Below are positions 10,543 through 58,539 of a stretch of 64,000 nt of DNA, piece by piece. Position numbers and translations under genes: made by a program. Each line of letters begins with the position of its first letter. Within the stretch, counting starts at the first letter, position 1. The notes beneath the pieces are model-generated. The model saw only the letters and a program-made list of their open reading frames with translations, did not search any database and was not told the origin of the DNA. The stretch is from IMG/VR virus record IMGVR_UViG_3300027770_000027, positions 163,353 to 227,352 of that record. The stretch is one strand, 5' to 3'.

Positions 10543-10567
10543 AAATATATGATAGCTGTTAACTAGC

Positions 10568-12631: not shown

Positions 12632-12649
12632 ATGGTAAATATAGTATAA

Positions 12650-15290: not shown

Positions 15291-15929
15291 TTATGGTGTC
15301 CAAATGTCAGATATCAAACTTTGTTCTTCACCAAATTGTTTACCATTCTCCTGTACGTACATGGTTGTTAATGCAATTCGCTGTTCTCTGGTACCAAAAA
15401 TTTCAATAAAAGCAGCTGAATCTCCTTTTGGAAAAATTCTTCCATCCCCTTGCAAATAAGACTGATTAAAAACTTTAAAAATGTTATCAATTTCTTCTCG
15501 GTACACAGGATCTGTATCTCTAATACCATCTGCAACAATTTCAACTGGAGAAGCTTTGGTTAGTGGTAGAAAAAAAAGTATATCATATAGTCTCAATGTT
15601 TCTCTCACGAGGATTCTAGAAGTATCTAAGAACTTTTCAGACACCAAGCCATTCAAATGAAGCCAAGAAGAGTATGCTAGATTGTCTAGTACACACCGAT
15701 CAAAAATTACAAAATCATTTTTACTATACTGAGTGGCTTGTTCTGCTAAAAAATCTAAAATTTGTCTTTGTGATTCTTCAGAGCCTTCTTTGTTGAGAGG
15801 GATATTGTTTTCCTTAACAAGATCTCTGTAAGTCTTCTCTGGAGTTTTATACATCGGCCATTTTGCTAGAAAATCTTGAATGTATGTAGATTTACCAACA
15901 CATTGGGTTCCTATTACAGCTATTTTCAT
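15291..15929 (-). CDS. P-loop nucleotide kinase-like protein (AAA_28/NadR type)
   Basis: MKIAVIGTQCVGKST, DRC.LD.LAY, YD..F.LP, DG.R..D..YR..ID, G..EQR. Confidence 0.8.
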   Translation of the reverse strand: MKIAVIGTQCVGKSTYIQDFLAKWPMYKTPEKTYRDLVKENNIPLNKEGSEESQRQILDFLAEQATQYSKNDFVIFDRCVLDNLAYSSWLHLNGLVSEKFLDTSRILVRETLRLYDILFFLPLTKASPVEIVADGIRDTDPVYREEIDNIFKVFNQSYLQGDGRIFPKGDSAAFIEIFGTREQRIALTTMYVQENGKQFGEEQSLISDIWTP

Positions 15930-18318: not shown

Positions 18319-18324
18319 AAAATA

Positions 18325-35892: not shown

Positions 35893-35894
35893 AA

Positions 35895-37515: not shown

Positions 37516-37517
37516 TT

Positions 37518-37643: not shown

Positions 37644-37652
37644 CACTAAATT

Positions 37653-38684: not shown

Positions 38685-38697
38685 CTTAAATATCCAC

Positions 38698-40289: not shown

Positions 40290-40294
40290 AAAAT

Positions 40295-41853: not shown

Positions 41854-41854
41854 T

Positions 41855-42430: not shown

Positions 42431-42431
42431 T

Positions 42432-43081: not shown

Positions 43082-43109
43082 TTGAATTTTTCTAGTTGTT
43101 CTGTATAAT
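43082..43109 (+). promoter_or_regulatory. sigma70-like promoter TTGAAT-N16-TATAAT upstream of gp46
   Basis: Sits at the right edge of the glycan island. Confidence 0.55.
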
Positions 43110-43125
43110 ACAGAAGCCTAGATAT

Positions 43126-44952
43126 ATGAAGTCTGTTGTATTTAAAAGTATCAAAATTCAAAATTTTCTTTCTGTGGGAGAAACTCCTATTGAATTACAA
43201 TTTAACACCGGAATATCTCTCATTACTGGAGAAAACCGAGACAAGGGTGGTCGAAATGGTGTTGGAAAGAGTTCTGTTGTAGAGTCTTTATATTGGTGTC
43301 TTTTTGGATCCACCATGAGAGACATTAAAAGAGAAAAAATCATCCACCAACAAGCAGACAGTTCTTGTGTTGTTAAATTGTTTTTTGATATTGTCTCTCT
43401 TTCAAAGAGAGATTGTTATGAATTGACAAGATCTATTGATCCTAATAAAGTTTCTTTGATTTGTAATGATGTAGACATTACAAGATCTTCAATGCCTAAG
43501 ACAGATGAATTAATTAAAGAGCTTGTCGGGGCTACAGAGGAGGTTTTTCAGAATGCGGTTATCATGTCTGCCAACAATACGTTGCCCTTCATGGCCCAGA
43601 AAAAGGTAGACAAGAGAAAATTTGTAGAAGGAATTCTACATCTAGGGGTTTTTGGAGAAATGCTATTGCAAATACGCCAGGACTACAATGACAATAAAAA
43701 GAAAAGTGAAATTGTAAGCACCAAATTTTTAGACAATCAGAAAAATTTAAATATCTATAAAAAACAATCAGAAAAATTTAAACAAAATCAAGAAACTAAA
43801 ATATCTTCTCTAACATCACGAATCGAAGAAATTAGTGATGTAATTTTAGATTTACAAAAACAAAACAGCAATTCTGCTTCAATACAAGAGTCTAAAGATG
43901 ATTTACAGTTGCAGATTACAAAAAAAGAAGACAAGATAGAAAAACTTTCTAAATTGTCTAATGAATGTATTGCCTCTGGTTTAGAGTTAGCCACTAAAAT
44001 TCAAAATTTAGTATCAGCTATCAAGTTTAATACACAAGAAAGAAACAAACTCCAACAAACAACTAAGACTTGTCCGGTGTGTAATCAGGACATTGCTAGT
44101 GTGGATGAACACCATATTCATAATTTGATAACAGAACTACAATCTAATATTCAAATTGATGAAAAATTGTTAGCATTTGCTCGTTCAGAAAAGAAAACCC
44201 AGGAAGAAAGTTGCAAGCGTATCGATGAAGCTCATAATATGTTACTTGGAGAGATACGATTGCATGAAAAAGAATTAAATTCTTTGGGATTAATAGCACA
44301 ACAGATAACCCAGCAAGAGATTAGGGCTAAAGAACTTAAAAATCAAATTGAAGAAATTGAAAAAGAAGATGATCAATTTGTATCTCTAATACAAACAACA
44401 GAGGAGTCTATTAAATCTTTGGAAATTGATGTAGAAGATATTCAAAAACAACTTTCAATTTTAGAAACCGCCAAATACATAGTATCTGAAGAAGGTGTTA
44501 AGACTTATATAGTCAAGAAGATGCTAAGTGTACTTAATAACCGTCTTAATTTTTATCTACAAGCCTTAGAAGCTCCTTGTCAATGTGAGTTTAATGAAAT
44601 GTTCGAGGAAACCATTCACAACGACCACGGAAAGGAATGTTCTTACTTCAATTTTAGCGGTGGAGAGAGAAAGCGTATCGACTTAGCCATTCTTTTTATG
44701 TTTCAAGATCTATTGCGCATGCAAACCGGCACTTCCTTTTCGATTAGCATGTATGATGAGCTGTTTGACTCTGCTTTGGATGAAAAGGGCGTCGAGAAAA
44801 TCTTAGACATCCTCAAGGAAAGGGTTGAAAAGTATAAAGAAAACATTTATATTATATCTCACAACAAGGCAGCTATCAAATCCGGAATTGATCGTGTAAT
44901 TCTTTTAGAAAAACATAACGGCAAAACCAGATACGCAGAACAACTTAATTAA
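43126..44952 (+). CDS. gp46: recombination ATPase gp46 (Rad50/SbcC)
   Basis: NFLSVG, NGVGKS, coiled coil with CPVC zinc hook, FSGGE, DE.FDSALD, ISH. Confidence 0.94.
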   Translation: MKSVVFKSIKIQNFLSVGETPIELQFNTGISLITGENRDKGGRNGVGKSSVVESLYWCLFGSTMRDIKREKIIHQQADSSCVVKLFFDIVSLSKRDCYELTRSIDPNKVSLICNDVDITRSSMPKTDELIKELVGATEEVFQNAVIMSANNTLPFMAQKKVDKRKFVEGILHLGVFGEMLLQIRQDYNDNKKKSEIVSTKFLDNQKNLNIYKKQSEKFKQNQETKISSLTSRIEEISDVILDLQKQNSNSASIQESKDDLQLQITKKEDKIEKLSKLSNECIASGLELATKIQNLVSAIKFNTQERNKLQQTTKTCPVCNQDIASVDEHHIHNLITELQSNIQIDEKLLAFARSEKKTQEESCKRIDEAHNMLLGEIRLHEKELNSLGLIAQQITQQEIRAKELKNQIEEIEKEDDQFVSLIQTTEESIKSLEIDVEDIQKQLSILETAKYIVSEEGVKTYIVKKMLSVLNNRLNFYLQALEAPCQCEFNEMFEETIHNDHGKECSYFNFSGGERKRIDLAILFMFQDLLRMQTGTSFSISMYDELFDSALDEKGVEKILDILKERVEKYKENIYIISHNKAAIKSGIDRVILLEKHNGKTRYAEQLN

Positions 44953-44958: not shown

Positions 44959-45711
44959 ATGTCAGAAGAAAATTATCTATTAATCAGTGATGACGGTCCT
45001 GGATTTCATACTATTGAAGGAGAAGGAGAACTTATTGGAAGACCAAGTGTCTTTATGCGTCTCTTTGGATGCAATTTGACATGTAAAGGTTGGGCTACTC
45101 CAGATTCTCCTTGGGGATGTGATTCCTTTATCTCTTGGTCTAAGAAAAATAAATATACATTTGAACAAATGTTCAATTTTTATGAAGAAAATGGACTAGC
45201 AGAAAAGTTAATGCGCGGAGATATTTGGAAAATTACAGGAGGAGAACCAATGCTACGCCAAGAACCTCTTTTAAATTTTGTAAGAGCATTTGTTGAGCGT
45301 TTTAATTTTTTACCCACTATAGATTTTGAGACCAACGGAACCATCAAGCCAAATGATTTATGGGTAAATGAATTCCAAGCAACCTTTACAGTGTCTCCTA
45401 AAATGTCCAACAATGGAGATCCTGTAGAAAAGAGATTTAAACCAGAAGTATTAGATTGGCACTGTGTTAATGATTCTTGTTTTAAGTTTGTTATAGGGTC
45501 AGAACAAGATTTGGAAGAATTGAAGGATGTTTATCTGTCTAGTACAGAATTTGCTATTCATTCTAGTCGAGTTTGGCTGATGGTGTGTGCAGGATCTCGT
45601 CAAGAACATATTGAACGGGCGGGTTCTGTTGCAGAATATGCTAAAAAATTAGGATTAAATTTTTCACCGCGCTTGCAACTTGTAATTTGGGATAAAGCTC
45701 TTAAAGTTTAA
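44959..45711 (+). CDS. queE: 7-carboxy-7-deazaguanine synthase (radical SAM)
   Basis: F.TIEGEG...G.PSVF.RL.GCNL.C(x11)CDS, ITGGEP.L, ETNGT, VSPK, KFV, PRLQ...W. Confidence 0.92.
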   Translation: MSEENYLLISDDGPGFHTIEGEGELIGRPSVFMRLFGCNLTCKGWATPDSPWGCDSFISWSKKNKYTFEQMFNFYEENGLAEKLMRGDIWKITGGEPMLRQEPLLNFVRAFVERFNFLPTIDFETNGTIKPNDLWVNEFQATFTVSPKMSNNGDPVEKRFKPEVLDWHCVNDSCFKFVIGSEQDLEELKDVYLSSTEFAIHSSRVWLMVCAGSRQEHIERAGSVAEYAKKLGLNFSPRLQLVIWDKALKV

Positions 45712-45746
45712 GTGCCTTTTCTGTTTATTTTCCTACTTATAATCAA

Positions 45747-47048
45747 ATGGCCTTAAAGATTAAAACCCAAAACAATGATGATCATGTAGTATACTCTTAC
45801 AACACAGTTCCTACACGTCTTCCAAATCTTCCAGCTGGCATTTATCAAAACTTTTTGCCTGTACATTTTTACATTGCAGTACAACCAATTAGAATACCGA
45901 AGCCAAAAGCAGTTGAAATGCCTGAAGTAGGACTACCAAGGGCTATTAATTACTATGCTGATTACGGTGGTTGTGGATTCTGGCGAATGATTTGGCCAGA
46001 AGTGTCGTTAAATGCTTATGCTCGAGCCACCATCAGTGGGTTAACGAGTATGGTCTTAGATATGCGCTTTTACCAAGGCATAAAGGCTATCAGATTTCAA
46101 AGACAAGCTACTCCAATGCAAAATGTTTTCATCAAGGAATTGAGAAAACATCAAAAAGAAATGGGATTCCGTTTAATTTATGAGGTTGATGATATTGTTT
46201 TTAGAAATGACATCCCCGATTACAATAGATGCAAAGAAGCATTTGCCACGAAAGAGACAGAAGACACAATTTTAGATATTATGGGTTCAATGGATGAAAT
46301 TACGGTTACTTGTAATTTCATGAAAGAATATTATATAAACAAAACCGGAAATAAAAAGGTCACAGTTATTCCTAACTATGCTCCAAAGTCCTGGCTTTCA
46401 CGCTTATATGATCCAGAAAGAATTGCAAAGTCTTATGAACAATACAAAAGACGTCCTCGAGTTATGTATGCCGGCTCTGGAACTCATGTAGATGTTATCA
46501 ATAGGACCGGGATGAAGGACGATTTTGAGCATGTCATTGAGGAAATTATTAAGGCTCGTAAGAAATTTAAGTTTGTATGGAAGGGTACCTTTCCAATTGC
46601 ATTAAAACCGTTTATTGATAATGGAGATATGGAGTTTGTGCAATGGTCTCCACTGTTTGATCATCCTAAGAGCATGTTTGACACCAATTGTAATGTATGT
46701 TTTGCTTCTTTGCAGGATAATATTTTCAATAGATCCAAGAGTAATATTAAAATCATTGAAGCTGGTGGCTTGGGGATGCCTGGAGCCTTCCAAGATATGT
46801 GTACCTATGAGGATGCGGAGGTAAAATTTAAGTCCGGTGCAGATTTAATCAACCAATTGGAGTATATTACAAGTGATGTTGATAGATATATGCAATTATC
46901 TGCTAATATTAACAAGTTTACTAACGGATTGTGGCTAGAAGATCATCTAGATCAGTATGAAGCCGTGTATTTCACGGAGTTTGGATCAAAAGAACGAAAT
47001 TTAAAAAGTCCAAGCTTGATTTCCTTGAATAAAGATCAGAAAATATAG
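45747..47048 (+). CDS. GT-B glycosyltransferase upstream of DNA polymerase
   Basis: GCG.WR..WP, QRQ, YEVDD, VIPN, GS..H, L.DN.FN.SKSNIK..E.G..G.P. Confidence 0.75.
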   Translation: MALKIKTQNNDDHVVYSYNTVPTRLPNLPAGIYQNFLPVHFYIAVQPIRIPKPKAVEMPEVGLPRAINYYADYGGCGFWRMIWPEVSLNAYARATISGLTSMVLDMRFYQGIKAIRFQRQATPMQNVFIKELRKHQKEMGFRLIYEVDDIVFRNDIPDYNRCKEAFATKETEDTILDIMGSMDEITVTCNFMKEYYINKTGNKKVTVIPNYAPKSWLSRLYDPERIAKSYEQYKRRPRVMYAGSGTHVDVINRTGMKDDFEHVIEEIIKARKKFKFVWKGTFPIALKPFIDNGDMEFVQWSPLFDHPKSMFDTNCNVCFASLQDNIFNRSKSNIKIIEAGGLGMPGAFQDMCTYEDAEVKFKSGADLINQLEYITSDVDRYMQLSANINKFTNGLWLEDHLDQYEAVYFTEFGSKERNLKSPSLISLNKDQKI

Positions 47049-47049
47049 C

Positions 47050-49620
47050 ATGTATCGAAATGTTTTTTATGATTCTGGCAAGCAATGCATTCATCTATGG
47101 ACCTGGAATGAACAAGGCAAGCGAGTTAAAATTGAATCAAGTTACGAACCATATCTTTTTGTGGAGTCTAACAGTGGTGAGGACGCTATCTCTATTTTCA
47201 ACACTCCTCTAAAGCGTGTTAAATTTAAGAATCAATTCGAAAGAAACAAGTTTGTCAATGAAACTCCGATTAAAAGAATATTCCACAACCTAAGTTGTGA
47301 GCAAGATTTTCTTTTAAATACTTTTAAGGACAATTTACACAAGCCAGAAGCCCTTTCAAATCCTTTAAAAATCTTTTTTCTGGATATTGAAACATATTCT
47401 CCTGGTGAATTTCCAGATCCTCATAACCCAAAAGACCCCATCAATCTAATCACCCTCTGTGATTCTTTGTCGGGACATTATTATTCATGGGGATTGAAGC
47501 CTTACAAGAGTAAGGATAAGGATGTCACATACTTTTATTGCAAAAAAGAGTCAGAACTGCTGATGGGATTTTTAAATTTTTGGAGTAAGGACCATCCAGA
47601 CATGTTGGTTACCTGGAATGGTGAAGGCTTTGATGTTCCCTACATCATGAATCGTCTGGGTAATCTTTTAGGAGAAGAGGAAACCAGTAGGATGTCTCCG
47701 GTAAATTCTATTTATTACCGGGAAAATGTCGCCATGAATAAATTTGGCAAGATGATTAACCGGTGGTATATTCGAGGAGTTAGTAATATTGACTACATGG
47801 AAGTCTATAAAACCTTTTCCCGGGGTGACCGAGAATCATACTCTTTAAATTTCATCGGGGAACTGGAATTGAATGAGGGGAAGACAGACGTTGGTGGACA
47901 GAATTTAGCAGAACTGTCAGAGCAAGACTGGGAACTTTTTGTAGACTATAACATTCAGGATGTCAAGTTGTTGGTCAAGTTGGACGAAAAACTTAAATTT
48001 ATCAAATTGATCAGAGCGCTATCCTACAAAGGATTTATTCCGTTTGAACAATCTCTCGGCAAAGTTTCTATGATCACAGGAGCAGTTGCTCACCAGGCAA
48101 TGCTTCAAAATTATAGAATTCCTACTTTTAAAAATGATGGCATCCGTGATGAATATGTTGGTGGGTATGTACACGAACCAGAAAGAGGATTGAGCAATGC
48201 TGTAGTAAGTTATGATGCCAATAGTTTGTATCCTAATACAATTATTACCCTCAACATTTCACCAGAAACAAAAATTGGTCGCATATTAGAAGTTGTTGAA
48301 GGGGAATATACCATTAAATTAACTAATGAACGTTTAGTAACACTTCCTAAAGAAAAGTTTGATAGGCTAGTACATAAAGAAGAACTTTCAATTTCACGGT
48401 ATAATGTACTTTACACTCAAAAATTTAAAGGAGTAGTTCCTAATCTAATTGATCGCATCTATAAAGAGCGTGTAGAAACCAAAGCTAGAGTGTCAGAATT
48501 GGTAGACATCGCACAAGACACAGAAGATCTAGAAAAGAAGGAAATTTTAGAAGCGGAAATTCATAACTTAGACACTATTCAAAATGTATTAAAATTAATC
48601 CTTAATAGTATCTACGGAGTATTTGCTCAAAAATATTCTCCGCTATTTGATATTGACCATTCTGCCAGTATTACCTTAACTGGACAAGCAGTTGCAAAGC
48701 AAGCCTCAGAGATTGCATATCAATATTCACAACTTAAGGGGTTTAAGGGTGATAAGAAAGAAGTATACATTTATGGTGATACAGATTCTTGTTATTTTAG
48801 TATTGCTCCGGTTTTAAAAGAGTTGGGAGCGTCTTTACTTAAAGATGGAAAACTCACAAAGGAAGCTCGACTTGTTCTTAAGGAAATTGATGGTTATTTG
48901 AATACTTCAATCATCACGTGGGCCAGAGAAGAATTTAAATCTACAGATCCACGTTTCGTGTTTAAACAAGAAGCCATTTGTGACGTAGCTTTCTTTCAAG
49001 AAAAAAAGAGATATATTCTCCATGTTATAGAACAAGAGGGGAAGACTCCTAAGAAACCCTTCAAATATGTAGGAGTAGAAGTTGCTCGCTCTACAATTTC
49101 AAAGCCGGTTAAAAGTCTTATCATGCAGGTTATTGAAAGTGCTATGCTGGTACAGGATAAGAAGAAAGCTGATGAAGTATTTCGTCGAGCTTATGAGGAA
49201 TTTTGTAATTTTAAAATTGAAGATGCTTCTATTCGTAGCAAAATTTCAGATTATGAAAAGTATGAAGCAAGGATAGGAGATTTGGGTCAAACGGGTAAAG
49301 GTACCCCTATTGGTCCTAAGGCAGGTATCAGCTACAATAACCTATTAAAGAAGCTAAAACTAGAAGGCAAATATGAACCCATTGGAAGTGGGCGTAAAAT
49401 CAAATATTTTTATGCAGCACGCAACAATTACAATTACAAAGTCATGGGATTCAATGATACATATCCTCCAGAATTGAAAGAAATTGTGGGATTAAATTAT
49501 CAATTGATGTTTGAAAAAATATTAGCACCTCCTATTCAACGGTTTTATGATGGAGTTGGTTGGAGGCTTCCCACTCCAGGAAGAGAAGTTCAAACAGATT
49601 TGTTTGATTTGTTTGAATAA
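47050..49620 (+). CDS. gp43: family B DNA polymerase gp43
   Basis: Exonuclease DIET, WN...FDVPY, YNIQD; polymerase D.NSLYP, K..LNS.YG, YGDTDS, KKRY; C-terminal DLFDLF. Confidence 0.97.
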   Translation: MYRNVFYDSGKQCIHLWTWNEQGKRVKIESSYEPYLFVESNSGEDAISIFNTPLKRVKFKNQFERNKFVNETPIKRIFHNLSCEQDFLLNTFKDNLHKPEALSNPLKIFFLDIETYSPGEFPDPHNPKDPINLITLCDSLSGHYYSWGLKPYKSKDKDVTYFYCKKESELLMGFLNFWSKDHPDMLVTWNGEGFDVPYIMNRLGNLLGEEETSRMSPVNSIYYRENVAMNKFGKMINRWYIRGVSNIDYMEVYKTFSRGDRESYSLNFIGELELNEGKTDVGGQNLAELSEQDWELFVDYNIQDVKLLVKLDEKLKFIKLIRALSYKGFIPFEQSLGKVSMITGAVAHQAMLQNYRIPTFKNDGIRDEYVGGYVHEPERGLSNAVVSYDANSLYPNTIITLNISPETKIGRILEVVEGEYTIKLTNERLVTLPKEKFDRLVHKEELSISRYNVLYTQKFKGVVPNLIDRIYKERVETKARVSELVDIAQDTEDLEKKEILEAEIHNLDTIQNVLKLILNSIYGVFAQKYSPLFDIDHSASITLTGQAVAKQASEIAYQYSQLKGFKGDKKEVYIYGDTDSCYFSIAPVLKELGASLLKDGKLTKEARLVLKEIDGYLNTSIITWAREEFKSTDPRFVFKQEAICDVAFFQEKKRYILHVIEQEGKTPKKPFKYVGVEVARSTISKPVKSLIMQVIESAMLVQDKKKADEVFRRAYEEFCNFKIEDASIRSKISDYEKYEARIGDLGQTGKGTPIGPKAGISYNNLLKKLKLEGKYEPIGSGRKIKYFYAARNNYNYKVMGFNDTYPPELKEIVGLNYQLMFEKILAPPIQRFYDGVGWRLPTPGREVQTDLFDLFE

Positions 49621-49637
49621 CCTCTTATTATAGTTAT

Positions 49638-50495
49638 ATGTTCAAGAAAGCATTAATAGCTCACGAAGCTCCTAGAGCAGCAATGGATAGAGTACAAGAA
49701 ATTACCGACTATGATTATTGTTTGGTACATCTCTTAGAGGAAGACCCCACTTATTTAAAATTTTTTAAAGAAGCTAAAGATAAAGGTAGATCCATCATCA
49801 TGGATTGTAGTCTGTTTGAATTGGGTCATGCATTTGATCCGGAAAAATATTATAAATGGCTTTTAGAAATACAACCAAATGAATACATAATTCCAGACGT
49901 GTGGCAAGAGTGTGAATCTAATTTGAAATCTTACAAAGAATTTACTTCAAAATTTGATCTCTCCAAATTAACTGGGAAACGCATAGGTGTATTACAGGGA
50001 AGGTCTTATGAAGACTTTAAACGAGCATATCTTTTCATGAAAACAGAGGCAGATAAGATTGCTATAAGTTTTGGATATGATTATTACTGGGAAAATTTTT
50101 CAACCAGTTGGCAAATTTCAGGACTTTGGATCGGTCAAAATTTACGTAATGTTGCAGACTTCGAAAAGATGGTAGCTAAGCCAACATCATATGCTCACGG
50201 AAGAACCCATTTAATTGAAAGTTTGTTTGAAGATGAAATCTGGGATACTACAAAGCCTCATCATTTATTGGGATGTGGAATTCCTATAGAATTTGCAAAT
50301 CTAGACCCATCAATTGAAAGTATTGATACCTCTCATCCTGTAATGTGTGGATTTTATGAAAAATCCTACGAAGAACCCACAACCATGTGGAGTAAAATTC
50401 ACGAAAAAATGGTTGATGTATATGATAAAGATATTTCAGACTCACAGTGGAACTTAATCAAATCTAACATAACACAATTTAAAAATCTTGTATGA
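49638..50495 (+). CDS. DpdA/TGT-like TIM-barrel protein (candidate deazaguanine inserter)
   Basis: IMD.S.FELG, PDV, GV.QG, HHLLG and SIDTS.P parallel the TGT-fold motifs; genome encodes a full preQ0 pathway. Confidence 0.65.
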   Translation: MFKKALIAHEAPRAAMDRVQEITDYDYCLVHLLEEDPTYLKFFKEAKDKGRSIIMDCSLFELGHAFDPEKYYKWLLEIQPNEYIIPDVWQECESNLKSYKEFTSKFDLSKLTGKRIGVLQGRSYEDFKRAYLFMKTEADKIAISFGYDYYWENFSTSWQISGLWIGQNLRNVADFEKMVAKPTSYAHGRTHLIESLFEDEIWDTTKPHHLLGCGIPIEFANLDPSIESIDTSHPVMCGFYEKSYEEPTTMWSKIHEKMVDVYDKDISDSQWNLIKSNITQFKNLV

Positions 50496-51304
50496 AAATA
50501 AGCGTTAAATCAATTACCCAACCATTAGTCAGGACAGAAGATGATGTACGATTTCTGACACCTGAGGAATTTATCGTATATACTGCCAGGGTATCAAATC
50601 CGTCAAATCAATTAAACACATTATCAGCTTCTAAATTAATAAAATATTGTATCAATCATGAACACTGGTCTGTGTTTGAACAGGCAGACATGACCCTAGA
50701 AATTGTAACTAGCAGAGACATATCGGCTCAAATTATTCGTCATAAAAGTTTTTCTTTTCAAGAGTTTAGTCAGCGATACAGTGCTGTAACTAACCTAGAA
50801 TCTTTTGATATTAGAAAACAAGCAGAAAAAAATCGTCAATCTAGTGAAGAAATTTTAGATTTGCCAGAAGAAGACATACAGAAAATTACCACTTATTTGC
50901 AAGCTGGTATGGATTTGTATGATTATCTCTTAAAGAAGGGAGCTGCTAGAGAAAGCGCGCGAAAAATTCTTCCTCTTTGTGCACAGACCACTTTATATAT
51001 GAAAGGATCTATAAGATCTTGGATTCATTATATTATGTTGAGGTCTAAAAAAGAAACTCAACTAGAACATCGAGAAATTGCTATAACAGCTGGAAAAATT
51101 TTACAAAAAACATTTCCAGCTGTGTTTGAAGCTTTGGAAGAAATTAAAACAGAGGCAGAAGAATTTGAAAAGTGGAAAGCAAATCCACATTATCAGTGTA
51201 ATGAACACCCCCAGACTTCCCCTTCAAGAGAAGGATTAAAAATTGCGCCAACTCAAGAAGAGATTCGCAAAACTCTGGTTGACAATGGCACATACATACT
51301 TTAA
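50492..51304 (+). CDS. thyX: flavin-dependent thymidylate synthase
   Basis: ARVSNP, HWSVFE, QI.RH.SFSFQEFSQRY, A.E.AR..LP, GS.RSWIH, TQ.EHR. Confidence 0.95.
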   Translation: MKISVKSITQPLVRTEDDVRFLTPEEFIVYTARVSNPSNQLNTLSASKLIKYCINHEHWSVFEQADMTLEIVTSRDISAQIIRHKSFSFQEFSQRYSAVTNLESFDIRKQAEKNRQSSEEILDLPEEDIQKITTYLQAGMDLYDYLLKKGAARESARKILPLCAQTTLYMKGSIRSWIHYIMLRSKKETQLEHREIAITAGKILQKTFPAVFEALEEIKTEAEEFEKWKANPHYQCNEHPQTSPSREGLKIAPTQEEIRKTLVDNGTYIL

Positions 51305-51307
51305 TAT
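51279..51307 (+). promoter_or_regulatory. sigma70 promoter TTGACA-N17-TAATAT
   Basis: Perfect -35, 17-bp spacer, ATG 7 nt downstream at 51315. Confidence 0.65.
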
Positions 51308-51314
51308 TAACATC

Positions 51315-51710
51315 ATGAGTAATGAAAACACACCACAAACAAACGTAGTTGTCTTTTTAGACATCGTTGGCAGAACCATCCTAGCTGAACAGGTAACCAA
51401 GACTGCTACTGAACTAACTGTTAAGAATCCAGTCATCTTTAATGTTGTTCCTGCAGACAACGGTCGTATGACTGTACAATTGTTTCCGGTATTCTTCAAG
51501 GAATTCCTTGCAGACAAGTCTGAAGACACAGTCTTTACTTGGAAGACTGATCAAATTACTGAATCCAATATTACAGCTTTGGATTTCCGACTATTGGGAC
51601 AATATTCTCAAATGTTTAATCCAGCAAATGTATTTGTTCCAGCAAATGAAGCAGGTGCAGTTAATCAACAGCCAGCCAACGCACAGGTTGTTAATTTATT
51701 TGACGAATAA
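51315..51710 (+). CDS. hypothetical protein (possible Sm/SH3-like beta fold)
   Basis: V.F.D..G.TILAE...L.VKNP; start moved to MSNENT. Confidence 0.65.
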   Translation: MSNENTPQTNVVVFLDIVGRTILAEQVTKTATELTVKNPVIFNVVPADNGRMTVQLFPVFFKEFLADKSEDTVFTWKTDQITESNITALDFRLLGQYSQMFNPANVFVPANEAGAVNQQPANAQVVNLFDE

Positions 51711-51718
51711 AAAATAAT

Positions 51719-52846
51719 ATGGCAAAAAAAACCCATTCTCCGGATGTGATGGCTGCTTTTAAGGTCTTAGATGACCTTAATCCAGACGCTACATTTCTCA
51801 ATGAATCCGCTCTTTCAAATATTAGCTCTTTCATTGATACAGGTTCAATGGCTCTTAATGCAATCATTAGTGGCTCCCTCAAAAATGGGGGAGTCCCTTC
51901 TGGTCGTATCACAGGGTTCAGTGGACCAACCTCTTGCGGCAAGACATATATCATTAATCGCATCCTGGCAAATGCTCAAAAAGCTGGTCGTTATGTAGTT
52001 ATTTTTGATACAGAAAATGCAGTAGATGACAAGGGAGCTACTAATATGGGTATGGATACTTCTAAAGTGAAGTATTGTCCTGTAGAGACTGTAGAACAGT
52101 GCCGTAATCAGATTAGCCAATTTTTGGATTCTGTTATTGCTAAAAAATTAAACAGCCAATTTATTATTTCTATAGATTCTCTTGGTAATTTAGTTTCTAC
52201 CAAGGAAATGGCAGACGTTGCTGCTGGAAAAGAAGCAATGGACATGGGTACACGAGCTAAAGGTCTTAAAAGCATGTTGAGAGTATTAACACATAAAGCA
52301 GCAAAAGCTGATGTGCCTATTATTTTCTCAAATCATGTTTATGAAAATCCCGCAGCCATGTTTCCTACATTAGTAAAACAACAATCAGGAGGATCTGGTC
52401 CTCTTTATATGTCTTCTGTATTGGTACAAATGTCTGTAAAGAATGAAAAAACCACAGGAGGAAATACCGGTAGTCGGGATGCCGTAGAAGATACTTCTCC
52501 AATGTCTAAAGACATCAACGGTGTAACTCTACGAGCACTTACTACTAAAAATAGGGTAGTTCCTCCTTTCATGGAAACTGAAATGTATCTTAACTTTAAG
52601 AATGGATTGGCAAAATATTCTGGATTGTTAGATATGGCAGTTGGGTATGGTGTAGTAATCCAAAATGGAGCAACATTTGCGTTGCCAGATGGCACCAAGT
52701 TGGGATATTATAAAAATTGGAGAGACAATGAAGAAATTTGGAATAAAATTCTACCAGAATTAGAAATCAAACTTCATGATGAACTTCAATATAAAAAAGA
52801 AGTAACTTCCAAAGAACCAGAAGACAATGAAGAAGACGAGGACTAG
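51719..52846 (+). CDS. uvsX: RecA-like recombinase UvsX
   Basis: DTGS.ALN..ISG, GP..CGKT, FDTE.A, IDSLGNL, DMG.RAK, NHVY, SGG.G, KNR. Confidence 0.93.
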   Translation: MAKKTHSPDVMAAFKVLDDLNPDATFLNESALSNISSFIDTGSMALNAIISGSLKNGGVPSGRITGFSGPTSCGKTYIINRILANAQKAGRYVVIFDTENAVDDKGATNMGMDTSKVKYCPVETVEQCRNQISQFLDSVIAKKLNSQFIISIDSLGNLVSTKEMADVAAGKEAMDMGTRAKGLKSMLRVLTHKAAKADVPIIFSNHVYENPAAMFPTLVKQQSGGSGPLYMSSVLVQMSVKNEKTTGGNTGSRDAVEDTSPMSKDINGVTLRALTTKNRVVPPFMETEMYLNFKNGLAKYSGLLDMAVGYGVVIQNGATFALPDGTKLGYYKNWRDNEEIWNKILPELEIKLHDELQYKKEVTSKEPEDNEEDED

Positions 52847-52928
52847 TACACGTACCGTCAAAAAAGGAAATGTAACAGTACGCAAAACAGTTACAATTTC
52901 AAAAACAATTAAACCTAGAAAAAAATAA
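52827..52928 (+). CDS. 33-aa highly basic peptide (not in the ORF track)
   Basis: MKKTRTSTRTVKKGNVTVRKTVTISKTIKPRKK*; its stop abuts the queD ATG at 52929. Confidence 0.55.
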   Translation: MKKTRTSTRTVKKGNVTVRKTVTISKTIKPRKK

Positions 52929-53390
52929 ATGGATATATTTGCATCATCTTTATTTGAAAGTACCAAAATAATTGAATTGGGTAGTTGTGCCTTTCGACAG
53001 TGGAGAGCTACAAATTCTCATTGTCGTTTTATTCATGGTTATCAGTTAAAGGCTAAGTTTTGGTTTAGCGGAACAGAATTGGATGATAAAAATTGGGTTG
53101 TAGACTTTGGAAGTCTAAAAGATCTTAAGAAAATCTTACAATCCCAATTTGATCATACCTTGTGTATTGCTCAAGATGATCCATTACTACCATCATTTAT
53201 TCAATTACATGATAATGGTGGATGTGATTTGAGAATCATGGAAGGTGTGGGTATTGAAAAGACTGCAGAGTGGTGTTTTAATGCAGCTGATAAATATATT
53301 AGGGAATCTACCTATGATCGCTGTTGGGTGAGTAAAGTTGAAGTATGGGAACATACAGAAAATTCAGCAACCTATAGGCGTCCCTTTTAA
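52929..53390 (+). CDS. queD: 6-carboxytetrahydropterin synthase
   Basis: SHC..IHGY, LD..NWVVDFG.LK, FDHT, G.E..A, VEVWE...NSA.Y. Confidence 0.9.
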   Translation: MDIFASSLFESTKIIELGSCAFRQWRATNSHCRFIHGYQLKAKFWFSGTELDDKNWVVDFGSLKDLKKILQSQFDHTLCIAQDDPLLPSFIQLHDNGGCDLRIMEGVGIEKTAEWCFNAADKYIRESTYDRCWVSKVEVWEHTENSATYRRPF

Positions 53391-53415
53391 GTAACTCTTC
53401 CCCCAGAACGTTTCA

Positions 53416-53453
53416 AATAAAGGCTATTGACCTTCCCGTCAATAGCCTTTATT
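53416..53453. promoter_or_regulatory. perfect 16-bp inverted repeat overlapping promoter TTGACC-N17-TATTAT
   Basis: aataaaggctattgac-cttccc-gtcaatagcctttatt; -35 at 53427, -10 at 53450, ATG at 53463. Confidence 0.7.
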
Positions 53454-53462
53454 ATATTAGAA

Positions 53463-54845
53463 ATGAAATCTTCTCTTCCGTTAGACCTTTCTCTTTTTGA
53501 GAAACTTATTGTATATAATGCATTAACGGATTCTAGTTATCTTGAAGCTGTTATAGAACATGCAAAACCTTCTTACTTTGAAAACAAAAATATTAAATCT
53601 GTGTTTGAGTCTCTGGCTCAGTATTATTCAACCTACGGCAAAACTCCTAACATTACGGAACTCAAGGTCCACATGGTGGATCAAGAAAAGCGCAATGCGT
53701 TAAAAGAGGTTGCTGTATCATTTGCTGAAATTGATAAAACATATGATAAGGAAATTCTATTAAAGAATTCAGAAAAATTCTTTAGAGAAAAGGCAGTATA
53801 TAATACTGTAATAAAAACCTCCATAGAGGTACAATCAGGTCAAATTAATACATCAAAAATCTTAGAAGATTTTGAAAAGGCGTGTCAAATTAATCTTGTT
53901 GAAAATTATGGATTTGATTATTTGGAAAGTATTGATGAACATTGTAAAGAATTACTCAAAACAGCCAAAACAATTTCTTCAGGATGGAAATGGCTTGATG
54001 AAAAAATTGGAGGTGGATTTTTAGCAGATGGTCGAGCTCTATATGTTTTTTATGGAGTGACCAATGTTGGTAAATCTATCTTTCTTGGAAACATTGCTAC
54101 CAATATTTTGAGTCAAGATAAAACAGTTGTCCTTATTTCTTTGGAAATGTCAGAACAAGTATATGCCAAGCGCATATCTGCTCAATTGACTAAGATTCCA
54201 ATGAATGATTTAACACTTCAGATTGAACCCCTGAAGCAAAGCATCGGCACTTATAAATTAAAACATAAAAATGCCAAATTAATCATTAAAGAATTTCCTC
54301 CTAAATCAGTATCACCAGTACACATCAAATCATACATTGATAAATTGGTGAGAAAAGGAGTAAAACCAGATGTGATTGTGTTAGATTATATTAATCTAGT
54401 AGCTCCTCCAGAAAAGGGACTAAATTCTTACGAATCAGTTAAGCAAATTACAGAAATGGTCAGAGCATTGTCTTACCATTTTGAGTGTCCGGTTATTAGT
54501 GCTACTCAGACCAACAGATCTGCGTATGGAGAATCTAATCCGGGACTTGAAACCATGAGTGAATCTATGGGATTGTCTCATACCGCAGACGCGCAGTTTC
54601 CAATTTGGACAGAAGAAGAAGATTTTGATTTAGGAATTATCCATATGGGTATTACAAAGAATCGATTCGGGCCTAGAGAGTGTCATACTGTTCTAGAAAT
54701 AGATTATCCTACACTCTCTCTGAGAGATCCTAGTGATGTATCTAAAACATACACTCTACCAAGGACAGTTCTGCCCGGATCTACTTCAGGAACCACTAGT
54801 ATTTCCGACACCCTTAAAATGATAGAATCCCTGGACAATGATTGA
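53463..54845 (+). CDS. gp41: replicative DnaB-like helicase gp41
   Basis: G..NVGKS, ISLEMSE, KEFP, LDYINL, SATQ.NR, SES.GL..TAD, KNRFG. Confidence 0.93.
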   Translation: MKSSLPLDLSLFEKLIVYNALTDSSYLEAVIEHAKPSYFENKNIKSVFESLAQYYSTYGKTPNITELKVHMVDQEKRNALKEVAVSFAEIDKTYDKEILLKNSEKFFREKAVYNTVIKTSIEVQSGQINTSKILEDFEKACQINLVENYGFDYLESIDEHCKELLKTAKTISSGWKWLDEKIGGGFLADGRALYVFYGVTNVGKSIFLGNIATNILSQDKTVVLISLEMSEQVYAKRISAQLTKIPMNDLTLQIEPLKQSIGTYKLKHKNAKLIIKEFPPKSVSPVHIKSYIDKLVRKGVKPDVIVLDYINLVAPPEKGLNSYESVKQITEMVRALSYHFECPVISATQTNRSAYGESNPGLETMSESMGLSHTADAQFPIWTEEEDFDLGIIHMGITKNRFGPRECHTVLEIDYPTLSLRDPSDVSKTYTLPRTVLPGSTSGTTSISDTLKMIESLDND

Positions 54846-55755
54846 GGATTTCCTAAATAAAAACATGACCGGATGTGTTAATGCCTTTACCCATAAAGAT
54901 TTGGATGGCGCTGTGAGTCTCCTAACTTTGATGTGGGCACTACCAGACTGTTACATTTCATATAAATCTGTTAATAATTTAGAAATTGAAACCCTCAAAT
55001 CTCAAGTTCAAAGTGTTAATAAACCGTGTAAAACGTTTATTTTAGATTTGGCCTTGAGAGAAGAATTTCTTCCCGATTTAGACCAAGAACACATAACTTT
55101 TATAGATCATCATGAAACTTCTATAGATTTTATTTCAAGATTTCAAAAGGCAAAAATTATACACAAAGATTTATCCTCTAATGCCTTACACATGGCACAG
55201 ATTTTTAAATCTGAAAAATTTCCGGTCAGGACAAATGCTCAAAAAATGCTTATAGCATTGGCGGATGATTTTGATTGTTATCGTTTGAAAATTCCAGAAT
55301 CTTACGATTTAAATTTATTGTTTTGGTCTGAATATAAAAACAATTTTACAAAATTTATTAAAGATTATTCCAATGGATTTAAACCCTTCACAGAACAACA
55401 AAAAAAAGCTATAGAGTTTCTTAAAAGAGAAGCTATAGAAGAAGCAGATAAGCTATCTTTATTTGAAGGCGTCGTTAATTTTGGATCTAAGAAAAAACGA
55501 GTAATAGCAGCCATGGCAGAAAAGTTTACAAATGGTGCTATGGATATAACCATTCAACGCCACCAACCAGATATTTTCTTTTTTATTAATATTAAAACAC
55601 AAAAAGTTTGTGTCAGACAAAACACAAAAGAAGATCCTATAGATGTTGGTAAATTTGCAGAAAAAATTTGTGACGGTGGTGGTCATCGGCATGCCGGTGG
55701 AGGAAAAATTACTCCCTTATTCATGGAAGTAACCAAAAACCTCAAGCCCCTATAA
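54838..55755 (+). CDS. DHH family phosphoesterase
   Basis: TH.DLDG, ILDL, IDHH, GGGH..AGG. Confidence 0.88.
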   Translation: MIEDFLNKNMTGCVNAFTHKDLDGAVSLLTLMWALPDCYISYKSVNNLEIETLKSQVQSVNKPCKTFILDLALREEFLPDLDQEHITFIDHHETSIDFISRFQKAKIIHKDLSSNALHMAQIFKSEKFPVRTNAQKMLIALADDFDCYRLKIPESYDLNLLFWSEYKNNFTKFIKDYSNGFKPFTEQQKKAIEFLKREAIEEADKLSLFEGVVNFGSKKKRVIAAMAEKFTNGAMDITIQRHQPDIFFFINIKTQKVCVRQNTKEDPIDVGKFAEKICDGGGHRHAGGGKITPLFMEVTKNLKPL

Positions 55756-55764
55756 ATAACCAAT

Positions 55765-56136
55765 ATGATCATCACATCATCCCAGCAAATTGAAGACATG
55801 ATGAATCCGTTGGAAGCAACAGATTTAAATGAGTTTGAAGACATCGCCTTAAAATTTGGAGCATTCGTCTGTATAGCTCGGAATAAAAAATTAAATTATC
55901 TTAACTTTCTTAAATTTTTAATTGAAGATAAAAAAACTCAAAAAATCTTTTTTGAATTACTTGGAGATTATAATTTACAGAATATAATTAAAACCTACCT
56001 TAGTTTAACACCCAATATTTATAAAAAGATTTTTCGTTTTAAACAAAACCGACAACCCAATGACCGAAATTCAAAAACAAATATACAACAGCTACCTGAG
56101 ACACTCGCGGCAAGGACTGCCGTGGAAACCCCGTAA
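55765..56136 (+). CDS. hypothetical protein
   Basis: TATAAATA 6 nt upstream of the ATG. Confidence 0.6.
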   Translation: MIITSSQQIEDMMNPLEATDLNEFEDIALKFGAFVCIARNKKLNYLNFLKFLIEDKKTQKIFFELLGDYNLQNIIKTYLSLTPNIYKKIFRFKQNRQPNDRNSKTNIQQLPETLAARTAVETP

Positions 56137-56704
56137 AGACTTTACAGATATTTCAACGGAAACAGAAACGCTACTCGCAAGACTTTCACAATTTTTTGAC
56201 AAATTTAGACATATTAAATGGGATGACTTTTTCGGAGCACCCAACAGCTTGCATCCCGATGAAAAATATCCTCCATTAAAATTTTTTATTTCTCGGGCTG
56301 CTATTAAAACATATAATTTGTATCATAAACAAAGAGAAGATTTGTCTCCCGAAAATCAAGCAGATTGGATTAAAGAGGGTTTACAATTTATTGCAACTTT
56401 TTGCATAACCAATAAAATTCCTCTTGAAAATTATTTGTCTGTTAAAAAAGATTCTATGCCGGTCTGGACAGAACATTACCGACAACATTTTATCAGTCCT
56501 TATAGCCTGATGGAATTGGGAGATATAAACATTAGTGCTCTAGAAGAGGATGAAAGAGAATTATGGATTCCTGGATTGTCTCAAAATTTTTCCTCTTTCA
56601 AATACCGATATCACAATTCTCCTCAAATTAAAAATCTCGTCAAAACCGGGACCTCTAAATTGAAAACTTTAATAAATTCTCACTTGAATTCCCTCTCCGC
56701 TTGA
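56060..56704 (+). CDS. hypothetical protein, possibly a gp59-like helicase loader
   Basis: Helical 214-aa protein immediately upstream of gp32 (T4 59-32 synteny); motif match is weak. Confidence 0.4.
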   Translation: MTEIQKQIYNSYLRHSRQGLPWKPRKDFTDISTETETLLARLSQFFDKFRHIKWDDFFGAPNSLHPDEKYPPLKFFISRAAIKTYNLYHKQREDLSPENQADWIKEGLQFIATFCITNKIPLENYLSVKKDSMPVWTEHYRQHFISPYSLMELGDINISALEEDERELWIPGLSQNFSSFKYRYHNSPQIKNLVKTGTSKLKTLINSHLNSLSA

Positions 56705-56712
56705 CCTATAAT
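56684..56712 (+). promoter_or_regulatory. sigma70-like promoter TTGAAT-N17-TATAAT for gp32
   Basis: 17-bp spacer and perfect -10. Confidence 0.65.
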
Positions 56713-56750
56713 ATTAATCACACAAACCACAAACCACATAACAAATAACC

Positions 56751-57626
56751 ATGAAATACACCGCTAACCTATTTGATTCCATCAAAGAAGCTCTGAACAA
56801 AAAGTCAAATTCTGAAGCCTCTAGTTTTAGAGACTTTATGAAATTAGAAATTGGCAAAACATATTTGGTCCGTCTATTGCCAAATATTAAAAATCCAGAA
56901 CGTACCATGTTTCACTACTACCACCATCTGTGGAATAGTGTGATTACAAATCAAATTACCTCTGTTCTTTGTCCCACCACTTACGGAGAACGTTGTCCTA
57001 TTGATGAATATCGCTCTAAATTGTACCGAGCCCAAGACAAGGCAGAAATTGAACGCAATAAACCAATTAAGCGCAACGAAAATTGGCTTGTGAATGTCTA
57101 CGTCATTCAAGATCCAACCAATCCAGAGAATAACGGACAGGTTAAAATTCTTCGTTATGGTAAACAATTAGATAAGATTATCACAGCAGCAATTTCCGGA
57201 GACGATTCCGCAGAATTTGGTTCCAAAGTTTTTGATCTTTCTGAAAAGGGATGTAATCTTCGGATCAAAGTTGAAGAAAATGAAGGAAAGTATCCTACAT
57301 ACGTTGCGTCAAGGTTTTTGAGTCCATCTACATTGGCCGGAAACCCAGATACAGATCTACTTTATGATAGTGTAAAAGATCTTGAGAGTATCTTTGAACA
57401 CAAATCTTTTGATGAAGTTCAAAAAATCTTTACCCAACACTGGCTCGGTCAAACTGAAGCTACTCCTAAAACCTCTTCTACCAAAGAAGTAGAAGATGAG
57501 GACAATTTTGAAGTAGAGTCTTACACCCCAGCCAAAAAAACCACAACAACCGTCTCTGAAGCAGAAGATGAAACGAATTCAACTCCAGTGGATGATCGCA
57601 TCCAAGACATTCTTCGTGATCTCTAA
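56751..57626 (+). CDS. gp32: single-stranded DNA-binding protein gp32
   Basis: VRLLP, H, CP.T.GE.CPI.E, NVYVI.DP.NPENNG.VKI..YGK...KI, FD....G.N..IK, acidic tail. Confidence 0.92.
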   Translation: MKYTANLFDSIKEALNKKSNSEASSFRDFMKLEIGKTYLVRLLPNIKNPERTMFHYYHHLWNSVITNQITSVLCPTTYGERCPIDEYRSKLYRAQDKAEIERNKPIKRNENWLVNVYVIQDPTNPENNGQVKILRYGKQLDKIITAAISGDDSAEFGSKVFDLSEKGCNLRIKVEENEGKYPTYVASRFLSPSTLAGNPDTDLLYDSVKDLESIFEHKSFDEVQKIFTQHWLGQTEATPKTSSTKEVEDEDNFEVESYTPAKKTTTTVSEAEDETNSTPVDDRIQDILRDL

Positions 57627-57690
57627 TATTTGGAGATTTTTAAAAGAAACTAGCTATTATATACACAAATCATTAACCAATAAAAAACAT

Positions 57691-58539
57691 ATGCCACGCA
57701 TCAAAACCAACGACGACATTCCCGACATTCAAAATACACTTGATGGATTTCCTAAGAAGTATATTCCAAAGGTAGGATCTCGTAATATTGTAGTTCCTAT
57801 GCAGATTCTTCGCAGGGATGGTACTATTAATCCTACTAAGGCAATTATTAGTATGTACACAGATTTGACTCCTGAAGTTAAGGGCACTAATATGAGCCGT
57901 TATCGCATTCTTGTTGAGGAAGTCTTGGCTAATCAAACTCATCGTATTGATGAAGTTATGGATATCCTACTAGATGAATGTAAGCTTCGACTCAAGAGTC
58001 AAAATGCCTACATCAAGATTAAGTTTGATTACTTTCTTAAGAAAGAAGCACCAGTTTCTAAGGTAGTTTCTCACATGGATTATCAGGGATCTCTGGAAGG
58101 TCGACTGATTAACGGAGAAAAGAAATTTTATCTACACGGCAATGTTCTTTACGCTTCCCTGTGTCCATGTTCAAAAGAAATTTCAGATTACGGTGCTCAC
58201 AATCAGCAATCATATGCAGACGTGACAGTTGAGTTGGCTAACGTAGGGACTGCAGAGTCAGATAATATCTATTGGCTAGAAGAATTGATTTTAGCAGTGG
58301 AAAAAAGTTCTTCGGCTCCAATTGTTAATGCACTCAAGCGTGTTGATGAAGCCTATCAAACAGAATTAATGTATGAAAATCCAGTATTTGTTGAAGACAT
58401 GGTTCGTAAGGTTGCAGTTGAACTTGATAAAGATCTTGATGGTCGCATCAAGGATTATCTAGTAATTGTAAACCACTATGAATCCATCCATTCAAGCATT
58501 GCTGTATCAGTAATTAATGCAGGAAGGGACTTGAAGTAG
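57691..58539 (+). CDS. folE2: GTP cyclohydrolase IB
   Basis: PDIQ, I.KVG, KGTNMSR, K.APVS, SLCPCSKEIS.YGAHNQ, LKR.DE...TE..YENP.FVED.VR, ESIH. Confidence 0.93.
   Translation: MPRIKTNDDIPDIQNTLDGFPKKYIPKVGSRNIVVPMQILRRDGTINPTKAIISMYTDLTPEVKGTNMSRYRILVEEVLANQTHRIDEVMDILLDECKLRLKSQNAYIKIKFDYFLKKEAPVSKVVSHMDYQGSLEGRLINGEKKFYLHGNVLYASLCPCSKEISDYGAHNQQSYADVTVELANVGTAESDNIYWLEELILAVEKSSSAPIVNALKRVDEAYQTELMYENPVFVEDMVRKVAVELDKDLDGRIKDYLVIVNHYESIHSSIAVSVINAGRDLK

Follow-up and report, generated by a model that had tools for sequence, protein, structure and literature searches.

It is rare for a canonical base to be replaced completely. Three phages that encode a DpdA3-type enzyme with the fold of tRNA-guanine transglycosylase (TGT), namely Campylobacter phage CP220, Cellulophaga phage phiST and immuto, have been tested, and in each of them 100% of G was replaced (PMC10516641). 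The product is dADG (2'-deoxy-7-amido-7-deazaguanosine) in CP220, a Firehammervirus, and dDG (2'-deoxy-7-deazaguanosine) in phiST. The route by which DpdA3 phages arrive at complete replacement has been unsettled since the first report for CP220 in 2019. Enterobacteria phage 9g, which uses DpdA1 together with a fusion of a glutamine amidotransferase (Gat) and QueC, carries 2'-deoxyarchaeosine (dG+) at about 25% of G. Here we analyzed a 64,000-nucleotide stretch of DNA (the window), which is the final 64 kb of a 227,352-bp IMG/VR record rated complete by CheckV and encodes, at 49638..50495 on the + strand, a TGT-fold protein of 285 amino acids (aa) directly after the gene of a family B DNA polymerase (PolB). 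The source is an uncultured freshwater T4-like jumbo phage of 227 kb, and identical sequence was found in freshwater and lake metagenomes; public runs contain the phage as contigs assembled from short reads. Its system is an uncultured member of the known DpdA3 kind, distinguished by a dispersed, fixed gene order, by the use of FolE2, and by split QueC and amidotransferase genes in a genome without QueF.

The TGT-fold protein is a member of the DpdA3 subfamily according to its sequence relationships. In tblastn alignments spanning at least 97% of its length, it was 40% identical to the DpdA of immuto (KNV73_gp206; E 4e-52) and 34% identical to CP220 gp056 (E 2e-36), and the latter level of identity extended to relatives of gp056, annotated as hypothetical protein. 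CP220 gp056 and the immuto protein are founding members of DpdA3 (Hutinet et al. 2023, PMC10516641). The window protein also matched phrog_19058 (1e-39) and was placed inside the DpdA3 tree. No Pfam or NCBIfam model, PF01702 (TGT) included, matched the open reading frame (ORF) at E<=0.01, and the sole match of the DpdA3 family profile among PDB sequences was bDpdA 7ui4, at an insignificant E of 0.96. Fold comparison was needed because sequence models miss the relationship between DpdA3 and TGT, and it identified the predicted structure as a triosephosphate isomerase-type (TIM) barrel like those of TGT and DpdA. An earlier note on this DNA had described the protein as a divergent, DpdA-like TGT-fold protein with DCS where TGT has DSG. 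The barrel and the reading of the motif held up, but the protein is not an unrecognized divergent DpdA, because it belongs to a named subfamily in which the pair of Asp residues is kept.

Eighteen positions are invariant in the DpdA3 family, among them D56, D87, R189, H209, G212, E218 and D230, and all 51 sequences of the family that were compared keep both putative catalytic Asp residues, D56 and D230. The DCS of the window protein is D56-C57-S58 in MDCSLFELG, for which the family consensus is LDNSIFELG. By motif similarity, MDCSLFE would place D56 opposite D89 of Escherichia coli TGT (TDSGGFQ), and IDTSHP would place D230 opposite the nucleophile D264 (FDCVMP), with equal spacing from Asp to Pro. 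Similarly, GVLQG resembles GIIQG, so that the GxxQG motif has a counterpart in DpdA3, and HLLGCGIP resembles YLMGVGKP. Compared with bacterial TGT (PF01702), DpdA3 is viral, about 90 residues shorter, without significant match to the sequence model, and lacks the Zn-binding CxCxxC...H subdomain; CxCxxC was found in 0 of the 51 family members, and none of the invariant residues is a Cys.

The DpdA3 family is large and essentially viral. At E<=1e-3, we found 1,089 cluster representatives (clustering at 50% identity), and at least 582 IMG/VR contigs encode a relative; the comparative base is thus widened to at least 582 viral contigs and about 1,090 clusters. Cellular occurrence was confined to 15 contigs among 185,579 species genomes, all from metagenome-assembled genomes (MAGs). 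Several metagenomic proteins (P0019, P0129, P0096 and P0135) are fusions of DpdA3 to GIY-YIG/NUMOD homing-endonuclease modules or to a C-terminal formyltransferase (DpdA3-DpdN). These were the only kinds of fusion partner among the metagenomic proteins, and nucleotide enzymes were not among them.

FolE2, QueD, QueE and QueC are all co-encoded in the genome according to Pfam, NCBIfam and PHROG matches, as in other DpdA3 systems, and by homology they would convert GTP into the free 7-deazaguanine base preQ0. QueF was not found in the genome, which also lacks DpdN and DpdL. QueC (7-cyano-7-deazaguanine synthase; PF06508 1e-53) occupies 11891..12685 on the - strand, with its true start probably internal, near 12631. 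It is followed on the same strand by a stand-alone class-II amidotransferase of the N-terminal nucleophile type (11248..11886; phrog_18128 6e-15, phrog_4736 1e-12 and phrog_14519), an ORF that was missing from the gene list of the earlier note. When re-read, this Gat ORF begins with MCGIAGS at 11886, 4 nt past the QueC stop, and has an N-terminal Cys and an HNG motif; its PHROG matches are GlmS-type class-II glutamine amidotransferases. Homologues lie directly after QueC in five other loci and keep the N-terminal MC(G/S/A)I.

The two genes together contain what defines the Gat-QueC of phage 9g, that is, a QueC domain and a class-II Gat domain with an N-terminal Cys, in two polypeptides and in the order QueC then Gat rather than in a single polypeptide with Gat N-terminal. 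The window QueC was 29% identical to residues 252-452 of 9g Gat-QueC (E 5e-23), while the Gat parts were barely alignable (E 0.1). Because the pair is split, reversed in order and barely alignable in its Gat part, we do not file it as Gat-QueC; on sequence grounds, it is a split pair possibly working like Gat-QueC. In 9g, the Gat-QueC fusion in place of QueC shifts the DNA product from 2'-deoxy-7-cyano-7-deazaguanosine (dPreQ0) to dG+, and Gat-QueC with DpdA yields dG+ (PMC6884629). The window Gat would either supply ammonia to QueC or convert preQ0 into the archaeosine base G+. It could equally be a glutaminase feeding QueC, as some loci with Gat also carry QueF and DpdN. Since the genome is without QueF, DpdN and DpdL, the base expected in the DNA is dPreQ0 or dG+, with dADG less likely. 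DpdA3 with dPreQ0 or dG+ is a combination so far unreported, whereas dADG is known from CP220. The QueD proteins of DpdA3-associated phages in our set, immuto included and CP220 not, have C-x3-HGY where 9g QueD has C-x3-HGH, and FRQ replaces the His region farther upstream, so that they seem to form a QueD subtype of their own.

Comparison with the described systems brings out the variant character of the locus. Immuto shares with the window phage, in addition to the DpdA3 orthologue, a QueD of the C-x3-HGY subtype, QueE, QueC and a kinase of the same AAA_28 family. It differs in having a compact DpdA3-x-DpdN-kinase-QueF module, a FolE of type IA and a family A polymerase, whereas the window phage is without QueF and DpdN, uses FolE2, has a stand-alone Gat after QueC and disperses these genes in a T4-type replisome; in view of these differences in the pathway, a different final base is expected. 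CP220 is, like the window phage, a T4-like myovirus with a QueC-family gene and two kinases of this same family, one of which adjoins DpdA3. However, its DpdA3 lies between a protein with HD and P-loop domains and the kinase, among structural genes rather than behind the polymerase; CP220 is without an amidotransferase homologue, and the window genome is without the HD protein. In phiST, DpdA3 also lies between 7-carboxy-7-deazaguanine (CDG) pathway genes and the polymerase (PMC10516641), but the pathway relies on DpdL, a paralogue of QueD, and ends with CDG or 7-deazaguanine (DG). The phiST protein was too distant to be reached by tblastn with the window protein. Phage 9g resembles the window phage in its FolE, QueD, QueE and QueC joined to a Gat function, and in a transglycosylase close to the DNA polymerase. 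It differs in that Gat and QueC are fused, that no AAA_28 kinase is present, that its enzyme is DpdA1, without BLAST similarity to DpdA3, and that its modification is partial and was shown on plasmid DNA.

The earlier note had placed the deazaguanine genes one by one among replisome genes, as gp46-queE-GT-pol-dpdA-like-thyX, uvsX-queD-gp41 and gp32-folE2, with queC near the primase, and our annotation agrees with it throughout. The full order on the + strand is gp46-QueE-GT-PolB-DpdA3-ThyX-orf-UvsX-QueD-gp41-DHH-x-x-gp32-FolE2 (GT, glycosyltransferase; x, other ORF), with gaps of 1-80 nt or overlaps. The conserved block starts with a gp46/Rad50-like recombination ATPase (43096..44952; PF02463 SMC_N 5.6e-14, syntenic in relatives). 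This is followed by a QueE-like radical S-adenosylmethionine enzyme (7-carboxy-7-deazaguanine synthase, 44959..45711; phrog_2076 2e-44, with TIGR QueE models matched below their cut-offs), a 433-aa glycosyltransferase of GT-B fold and GT4-like type (45747..47048), and the gp43-like PolB (47050..49620; PF00136 8e-26, PF03104 5e-22). The start of ThyX, a flavin-dependent thymidylate synthase (50492..51304; PF02511 1e-43, TIGR02170 159 bits), overlaps the DpdA3 stop by 4 nt. A conserved ORF without Pfam or PHROG match (51243..51710; cluster 10, 20 loci), whose true start is probably internal, separates ThyX from the UvsX/RecA-like recombinase (51719..52846; PF00154 3e-22). Next come QueD (6-carboxytetrahydropterin synthase of the C-x3-HGY subtype, 52929..53390; PF01242 5e-19), the gp41/DnaB-like replicative helicase (53427..54845; PF03796 2.6e-23) and a DHH/DHHA1 phosphoesterase of NrnA/RecJ-like type (54838..55755; PF02272 and PF01368 weak, phrog_4771 2.7e-15, synteny). 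The block closes with the gp32 single-stranded DNA binding protein (56751..57626; PF08804 3e-17) and FolE2 (GTP cyclohydrolase IB, step 1 of the pathway, 57568..58539; PF02649 2e-63, NF010200 204 bits), the true start of which is probably internal, near 57691. On the - strand, one small ORF lies between QueC and the Toprim/DnaG-like primase (13216..14181; PF13155 and PF08275 weak, conserved synteny).

Relatives were gathered by two independent searches, one seeded with DpdA3 and the other with PolB. In 20 of 20 PolB relatives (64-88% identity) with downstream sequence, DpdA3 came right after PolB in the same order, and the order from gp46 to FolE2 was kept as far as the contigs extend; DpdA3 identity across these contigs was 47-69%. 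The same order thus recurred in more than 20 distinct contigs with a protein divergence of 12-52%; it is not due to chance. Pairwise distances of DpdA3 and PolB were correlated (Spearman 0.885, 210 pairs), compared with 0.71 for UvsX, 0.79 for gp41 and 0.81 for gp32 against PolB, and the DpdA3 tree recovered the architecture groups with support of 1.0, 0.994 and 0.956. The QueC region was syntenic in three relatives, in the order kinase-x-primase-x-QueC-Gat-GT2_5-like-DUF366. Within this lineage, the dispersed arrangement is therefore fixed and has diverged together with the replisome. The deazaguanine genes have been inherited vertically with the replisome here, as the earlier note had proposed, and, being co-oriented with the replication genes, are probably co-expressed with them.

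Only this clade (clade A) has the dispersed state. In the sister clade (clade B, PolB about 51% identical), gp46-GT-PolB-DpdA3 is followed by DpdN (a formyltransferase), kinase, QueF and orf-UvsX-gp41-gp32, so that QueF takes the place of ThyX before the conserved ORF. Most DpdA3 loci have a compact DpdA3-(DpdN)-kinase-QueF module beside capsid genes, and immuto-like loci have the order gp47-gp46-QueE-QueD-FolE-DpdA3-DpdN-(kinase)-QueF-QueC. The statement in the earlier note that the pathway is not a compact cassette is thus accurate for clade A and fails for sister clades and other phage types that have the DpdA3-DpdN-kinase-QueF module. The DHH/DHHA1 gene between gp41 and gp32 was seen in clade A only, with a small unrelated ORF at that place in clade B.

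Our preferred reading, which we hold at about even confidence, is a DpdA3 system that exchanges guanine on phage DNA after its synthesis. DpdA3 would swap guanine for the deaza base via a covalent Asp-deoxyribosyl intermediate. To our knowledge, every characterized relative among TGT and DpdA enzymes acts on a polynucleotide, which is why we place the exchange after synthesis. In particular, the DpdA1 of 9g, likewise small, acidic and encoded close to its polymerase, modifies plasmid DNA in E. coli (PMC6884629). Replacement would be near-complete, as in CP220, phiST and immuto, and by analogy with them most or all guanine of the phage DNA is probably replaced by a 7-deazaguanine base; the extensive G replacement that the earlier note suggested is a property for which the DpdA3 family is known (PMC10516641). 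The released guanine would be recycled by a phage purine phosphoribosyltransferase (PRTase) and a P-loop kinase to GTP, which would again enter the pathway at FolE2, and the modification would shield the DNA from restriction.

Several points weigh against exchange on DNA. Hutinet et al. inferred that modification follows replication because a DpdA is present, which is the sole published argument for this route, and DpdA3 failed in heterologous tests in E. coli in which DpdA1 and DpdA2 worked (PMC10516641). PMC10516641 also cites a report of free dADG nucleoside in cells infected with CP220. A literature search found no paper on DpdA3 later than PMC10516641. As for the protein, the mapping of D56 comes from motif similarity, without residue-level superposition, and that of D230 from a low-probability profile alignment and motif spacing. 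We know of no DpdA3 member whose action on DNA has been demonstrated, and replacement that is complete usually points to a pathway acting on the nucleotide pool. In addition, the kinase linked to DpdA3 is nearest to a nucleoside kinase, the ribosylnicotinamide kinase domain of NadR, and not to guanylate kinase, and the final base of this uncultured phage is predicted from its genes.

In a second reading, the base is exchanged before replication. The earlier note had suggested that the protein forms a modified nucleotide for incorporation by the polymerase. DpdA3 would then act on free deoxyguanosine or a dG nucleotide instead of DNA, paralogues of the AAA_28 kinase would phosphorylate the product, host nucleoside-diphosphate kinase would make the triphosphate, and PolB would incorporate it instead of dGTP, while the exchange itself and deoxynucleoside triphosphatase (dNTPase)-like enzymes would drain the dGTP pool. 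We consider this route a serious possibility, though we would not bet on it. Its main evidence is the kinase. In 57 of 80 viral loci, DpdA3 is followed 1-3 genes downstream by an AAA_28 P-loop kinase that is annotated as thymidylate kinase, and 6 of 15 MAG loci have a kinase close to DpdA3. The adjacency holds across unrelated backbones, including CP220, the PolA-type immuto and MAG contigs labelled Firmicutes. Among 50,697 phage records, the family was found at E<=1e-8 in DpdA3 phages only, and the genome of 9g, with DpdA1 and partial modification, is without such a kinase. Its sole solved relative, the NadR domain, also fits a nucleoside substrate. Each Campylobacter phage has two copies, as does the window genome, where one is at 15291..15929 on the - strand (PF13521 5e-16; phrog_2107 3.5e-21; cluster 1) and the second at 159361-159945 of the full genome record (G000).

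Further neighbors point in the same direction. Several loci have a MazG-like or dUTPase-like gene next to DpdA3, as in the orders kinase-DpdA3-dUTPase-like (L111) and FolE-MazG-like-x-DpdA3 (L101), and phiST has a MazG/dUTPase-like gene and DpdA3 in one five-gene stretch (PMC10516641). The HD and P-loop protein of CP220 is encoded directly upstream of DpdA3. The 100% replacement, the failed tests on DNA and the free dADG nucleoside would likewise be expected of a pool route. However, we know of no TGT-fold enzyme with a mononucleotide or nucleoside as its substrate. In the genome of the window phage, searches for HD and MazG proteins were negative and a single dUTPase-family gene was found, so that no dGTP-removing enzyme is evident. 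The neighbor counts are not independent because the DpdA3 loci are phylogenetically related, and in the kinase tree both paralogues of the genome sit on long branches, with the DpdA3-linked copy not singled out.

The kinase is moreover equally explained by salvage of guanine to GTP. A PRTase of the purine/xanthine-guanine type is encoded near DpdA3 in 10 viral and three MAG loci, and the nearest solved relatives of this family are purine and xanthine-guanine PRTases; the window phage genome has a PRTase-like gene as well as genes for ribonucleotide reductase. PRTase and kinase would together complete a salvage loop from guanine through GMP and GTP to preQ0, which is compatible with exchange either on DNA or on nucleotides.

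Other features of the locus do not bear on this choice. The DpdA1 of 9g, which modifies plasmid DNA in E. coli (PMC6884629), is a 317-aa acidic protein (pI 5.6) encoded two genes from its polymerase. Adjacency to the polymerase is thus no argument for incorporation by it. Net charge, isoelectric point and small size, which might have suggested a small-molecule substrate, were rejected as arguments since 9g DpdA1 is alike in them and E. coli TGT has a pI of 6.0; neither these properties nor proximity to the polymerase separate DpdA3 from the DNA-acting DpdA1. The divergence of the DSG motif does not favor a pre-replicative route, as both catalytic Asp positions are kept, and the dispersed gene order, being clade-specific, is no evidence on mechanism. 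Exchange on DNA therefore stays the default, and the nucleotide-pool route is a live contender that is now somewhat better supported than before, without being the best-supported reading.

If the pool route were correct, a functional analogy with the hydroxymethyl-dC pathway of T4 (gp56 dCTPase, gp42 hydroxymethylase and gp1 dNMP kinase) would hold, though the enzymes are not homologous. In T4, complete base replacement at the nucleotide level is achieved by three enzymes whose genes lie among those for replication, namely an NTPase, an enzyme that modifies the base and a kinase, a trio resembled in some DpdA3 loci by the kinase, DpdA3 and a dUTPase- or MazG-like gene. DpdA3 would then be the first TGT-fold enzyme to act on free deoxyguanosine or a dG nucleotide, with the NadR-like kinase or kinases, and a dNTPase where present, building a pool of a 7-deaza-dGTP analogue, a prospect that we regard as tentative. 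It would account for the restriction of 100% replacement to DpdA3 phages, and the genome of the phage described here would be fully substituted with dPreQ0 or dG+, a combination so far unobserved. The present comparison contributes to this question a kinase family that tracks DpdA3, a predicted chemistry of DpdA3 with QueC and a split amidotransferase, and a pathway fixed within a replisome block. DNA with full deaza substitution withstands most restriction enzymes and is difficult to sequence or clone; such abundant freshwater phages may consequently be under-represented or distorted in virome data.

In a third reading, which we regard as improbable, the GT-B enzyme or the GT2_5-like and DUF366 proteins would decorate the base further, for instance with a sugar, yielding an undescribed hypermodified deazaguanine. 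In clades A and B (about 30 loci), the GT-B gene immediately precedes that of PolB, the family has more than 100 invariant positions among 17 sequences, and the block QueC-Gat-GT2_5-like-DUF366 is kept in three relatives. The assignment of the enzyme rests on phrog_7162 (1.5e-20), synteny and a structural model of only moderate confidence (predicted local distance difference test 69.5), for which the top Foldseek matches were PglA, MshA and WaaG at E 2e-9. However, no hydroxyl that might serve as acceptor is obvious in preQ0, 7-amido-7-deazaguanine or G+, the same GT occurs in clade B with another base pathway (QueF and DpdN), and the phage carries many other glycosyltransferases. The GT2_5-like protein (10568-11251, -; PF13712 4e-6) and the DUF366 protein (9949-10602, -; PF04017 2.6e-17), encoded after QueC and Gat, are possible extra components of the pathway. 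That the TGT-fold protein instead modifies a tRNA of the host or phage, such as tRNA-Asn GUU, with a queuosine precursor and leaves the DNA unmodified is highly unlikely, for although its fold is that of tRNA-guanine transglycosylase and the genome encodes 14 tRNAs including Asn-GTT, the protein has no Pfam TGT match, the Zn motif and its subdomain are absent throughout the family, that family is almost purely viral apart from the 15 MAG contigs, and its tested relatives are the DpdA3 of phages with fully substituted DNA (PMC10516641).

The T4-like character of the phage is seen in a Straboviridae-type replisome identified by Pfam matches, with gp43, gp41, gp61, gp32, UvsX, UvsY and a UvsW-like helicase, as well as gp46/47, gp44/45 and a gp55-like sigma factor in the same genome. 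PolB is less than 30% identical to that of any isolated phage, which marks the phage as a deep, uncultured branch.

In a lake metatranscriptome, contigs free of mismatches covered DpdA3-ThyX at a depth of 8.7 and orf-UvsX-QueD at a depth of 50, and coverage of PolB had gaps. Such unevenness points to RNA rather than carried-over DNA, although assembled contigs cannot prove transcription. A contig with 6-fold higher depth starts at 51364, abutting adapter sequence, and a promoter-like TTGACA-17-TAATAT at 51279-51307 (+) lies just upstream, within the annotated start of the ORF preceding UvsX. The segment 51279-51364 is thus a possible internal promoter in combination with a shorter true ORF. 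A promoter scan gave 60 sites against 62.9 expected, which is chance level.

Between gp47 (29637-30692) and gp46, a 12.4-kb island at 30689-43073 (+) has a GC content of 28.9%, compared with 35% in its flanks. Its 16 genes include those for GT2, GT10 fucosyltransferase, GT25, GT47/exostosin-like, GT1 and nucleotide-diphospho-sugar transferase proteins, an NAD-dependent epimerase/dehydratase, FkbM and other methyltransferases, and a DUF268 protein. The island appears hypervariable, as relatives share only scattered homologues upstream of gp46. Unusually for a phage, two tandem DUF1501 (sulfatase-like) genes with very strong matches to the family model (3e-134 and 6e-111) lie at 16954-19584 (-); they are kept in one relative. 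A SegE-like GIY-YIG homing endonuclease at 26507-26923 (-) adjoins an ORF of 1,557 aa at 21833-26506 (+). Outside the window, ARAGORN placed the 14 tRNAs in three clusters at 39411-96506 of the genome contig (G000:C1), with a candidate transfer-messenger RNA-like gene at 39411-39835. Finally, a weak Cpn10/GroES-like ORF at 9160-9549 (-) is kept in three relatives.

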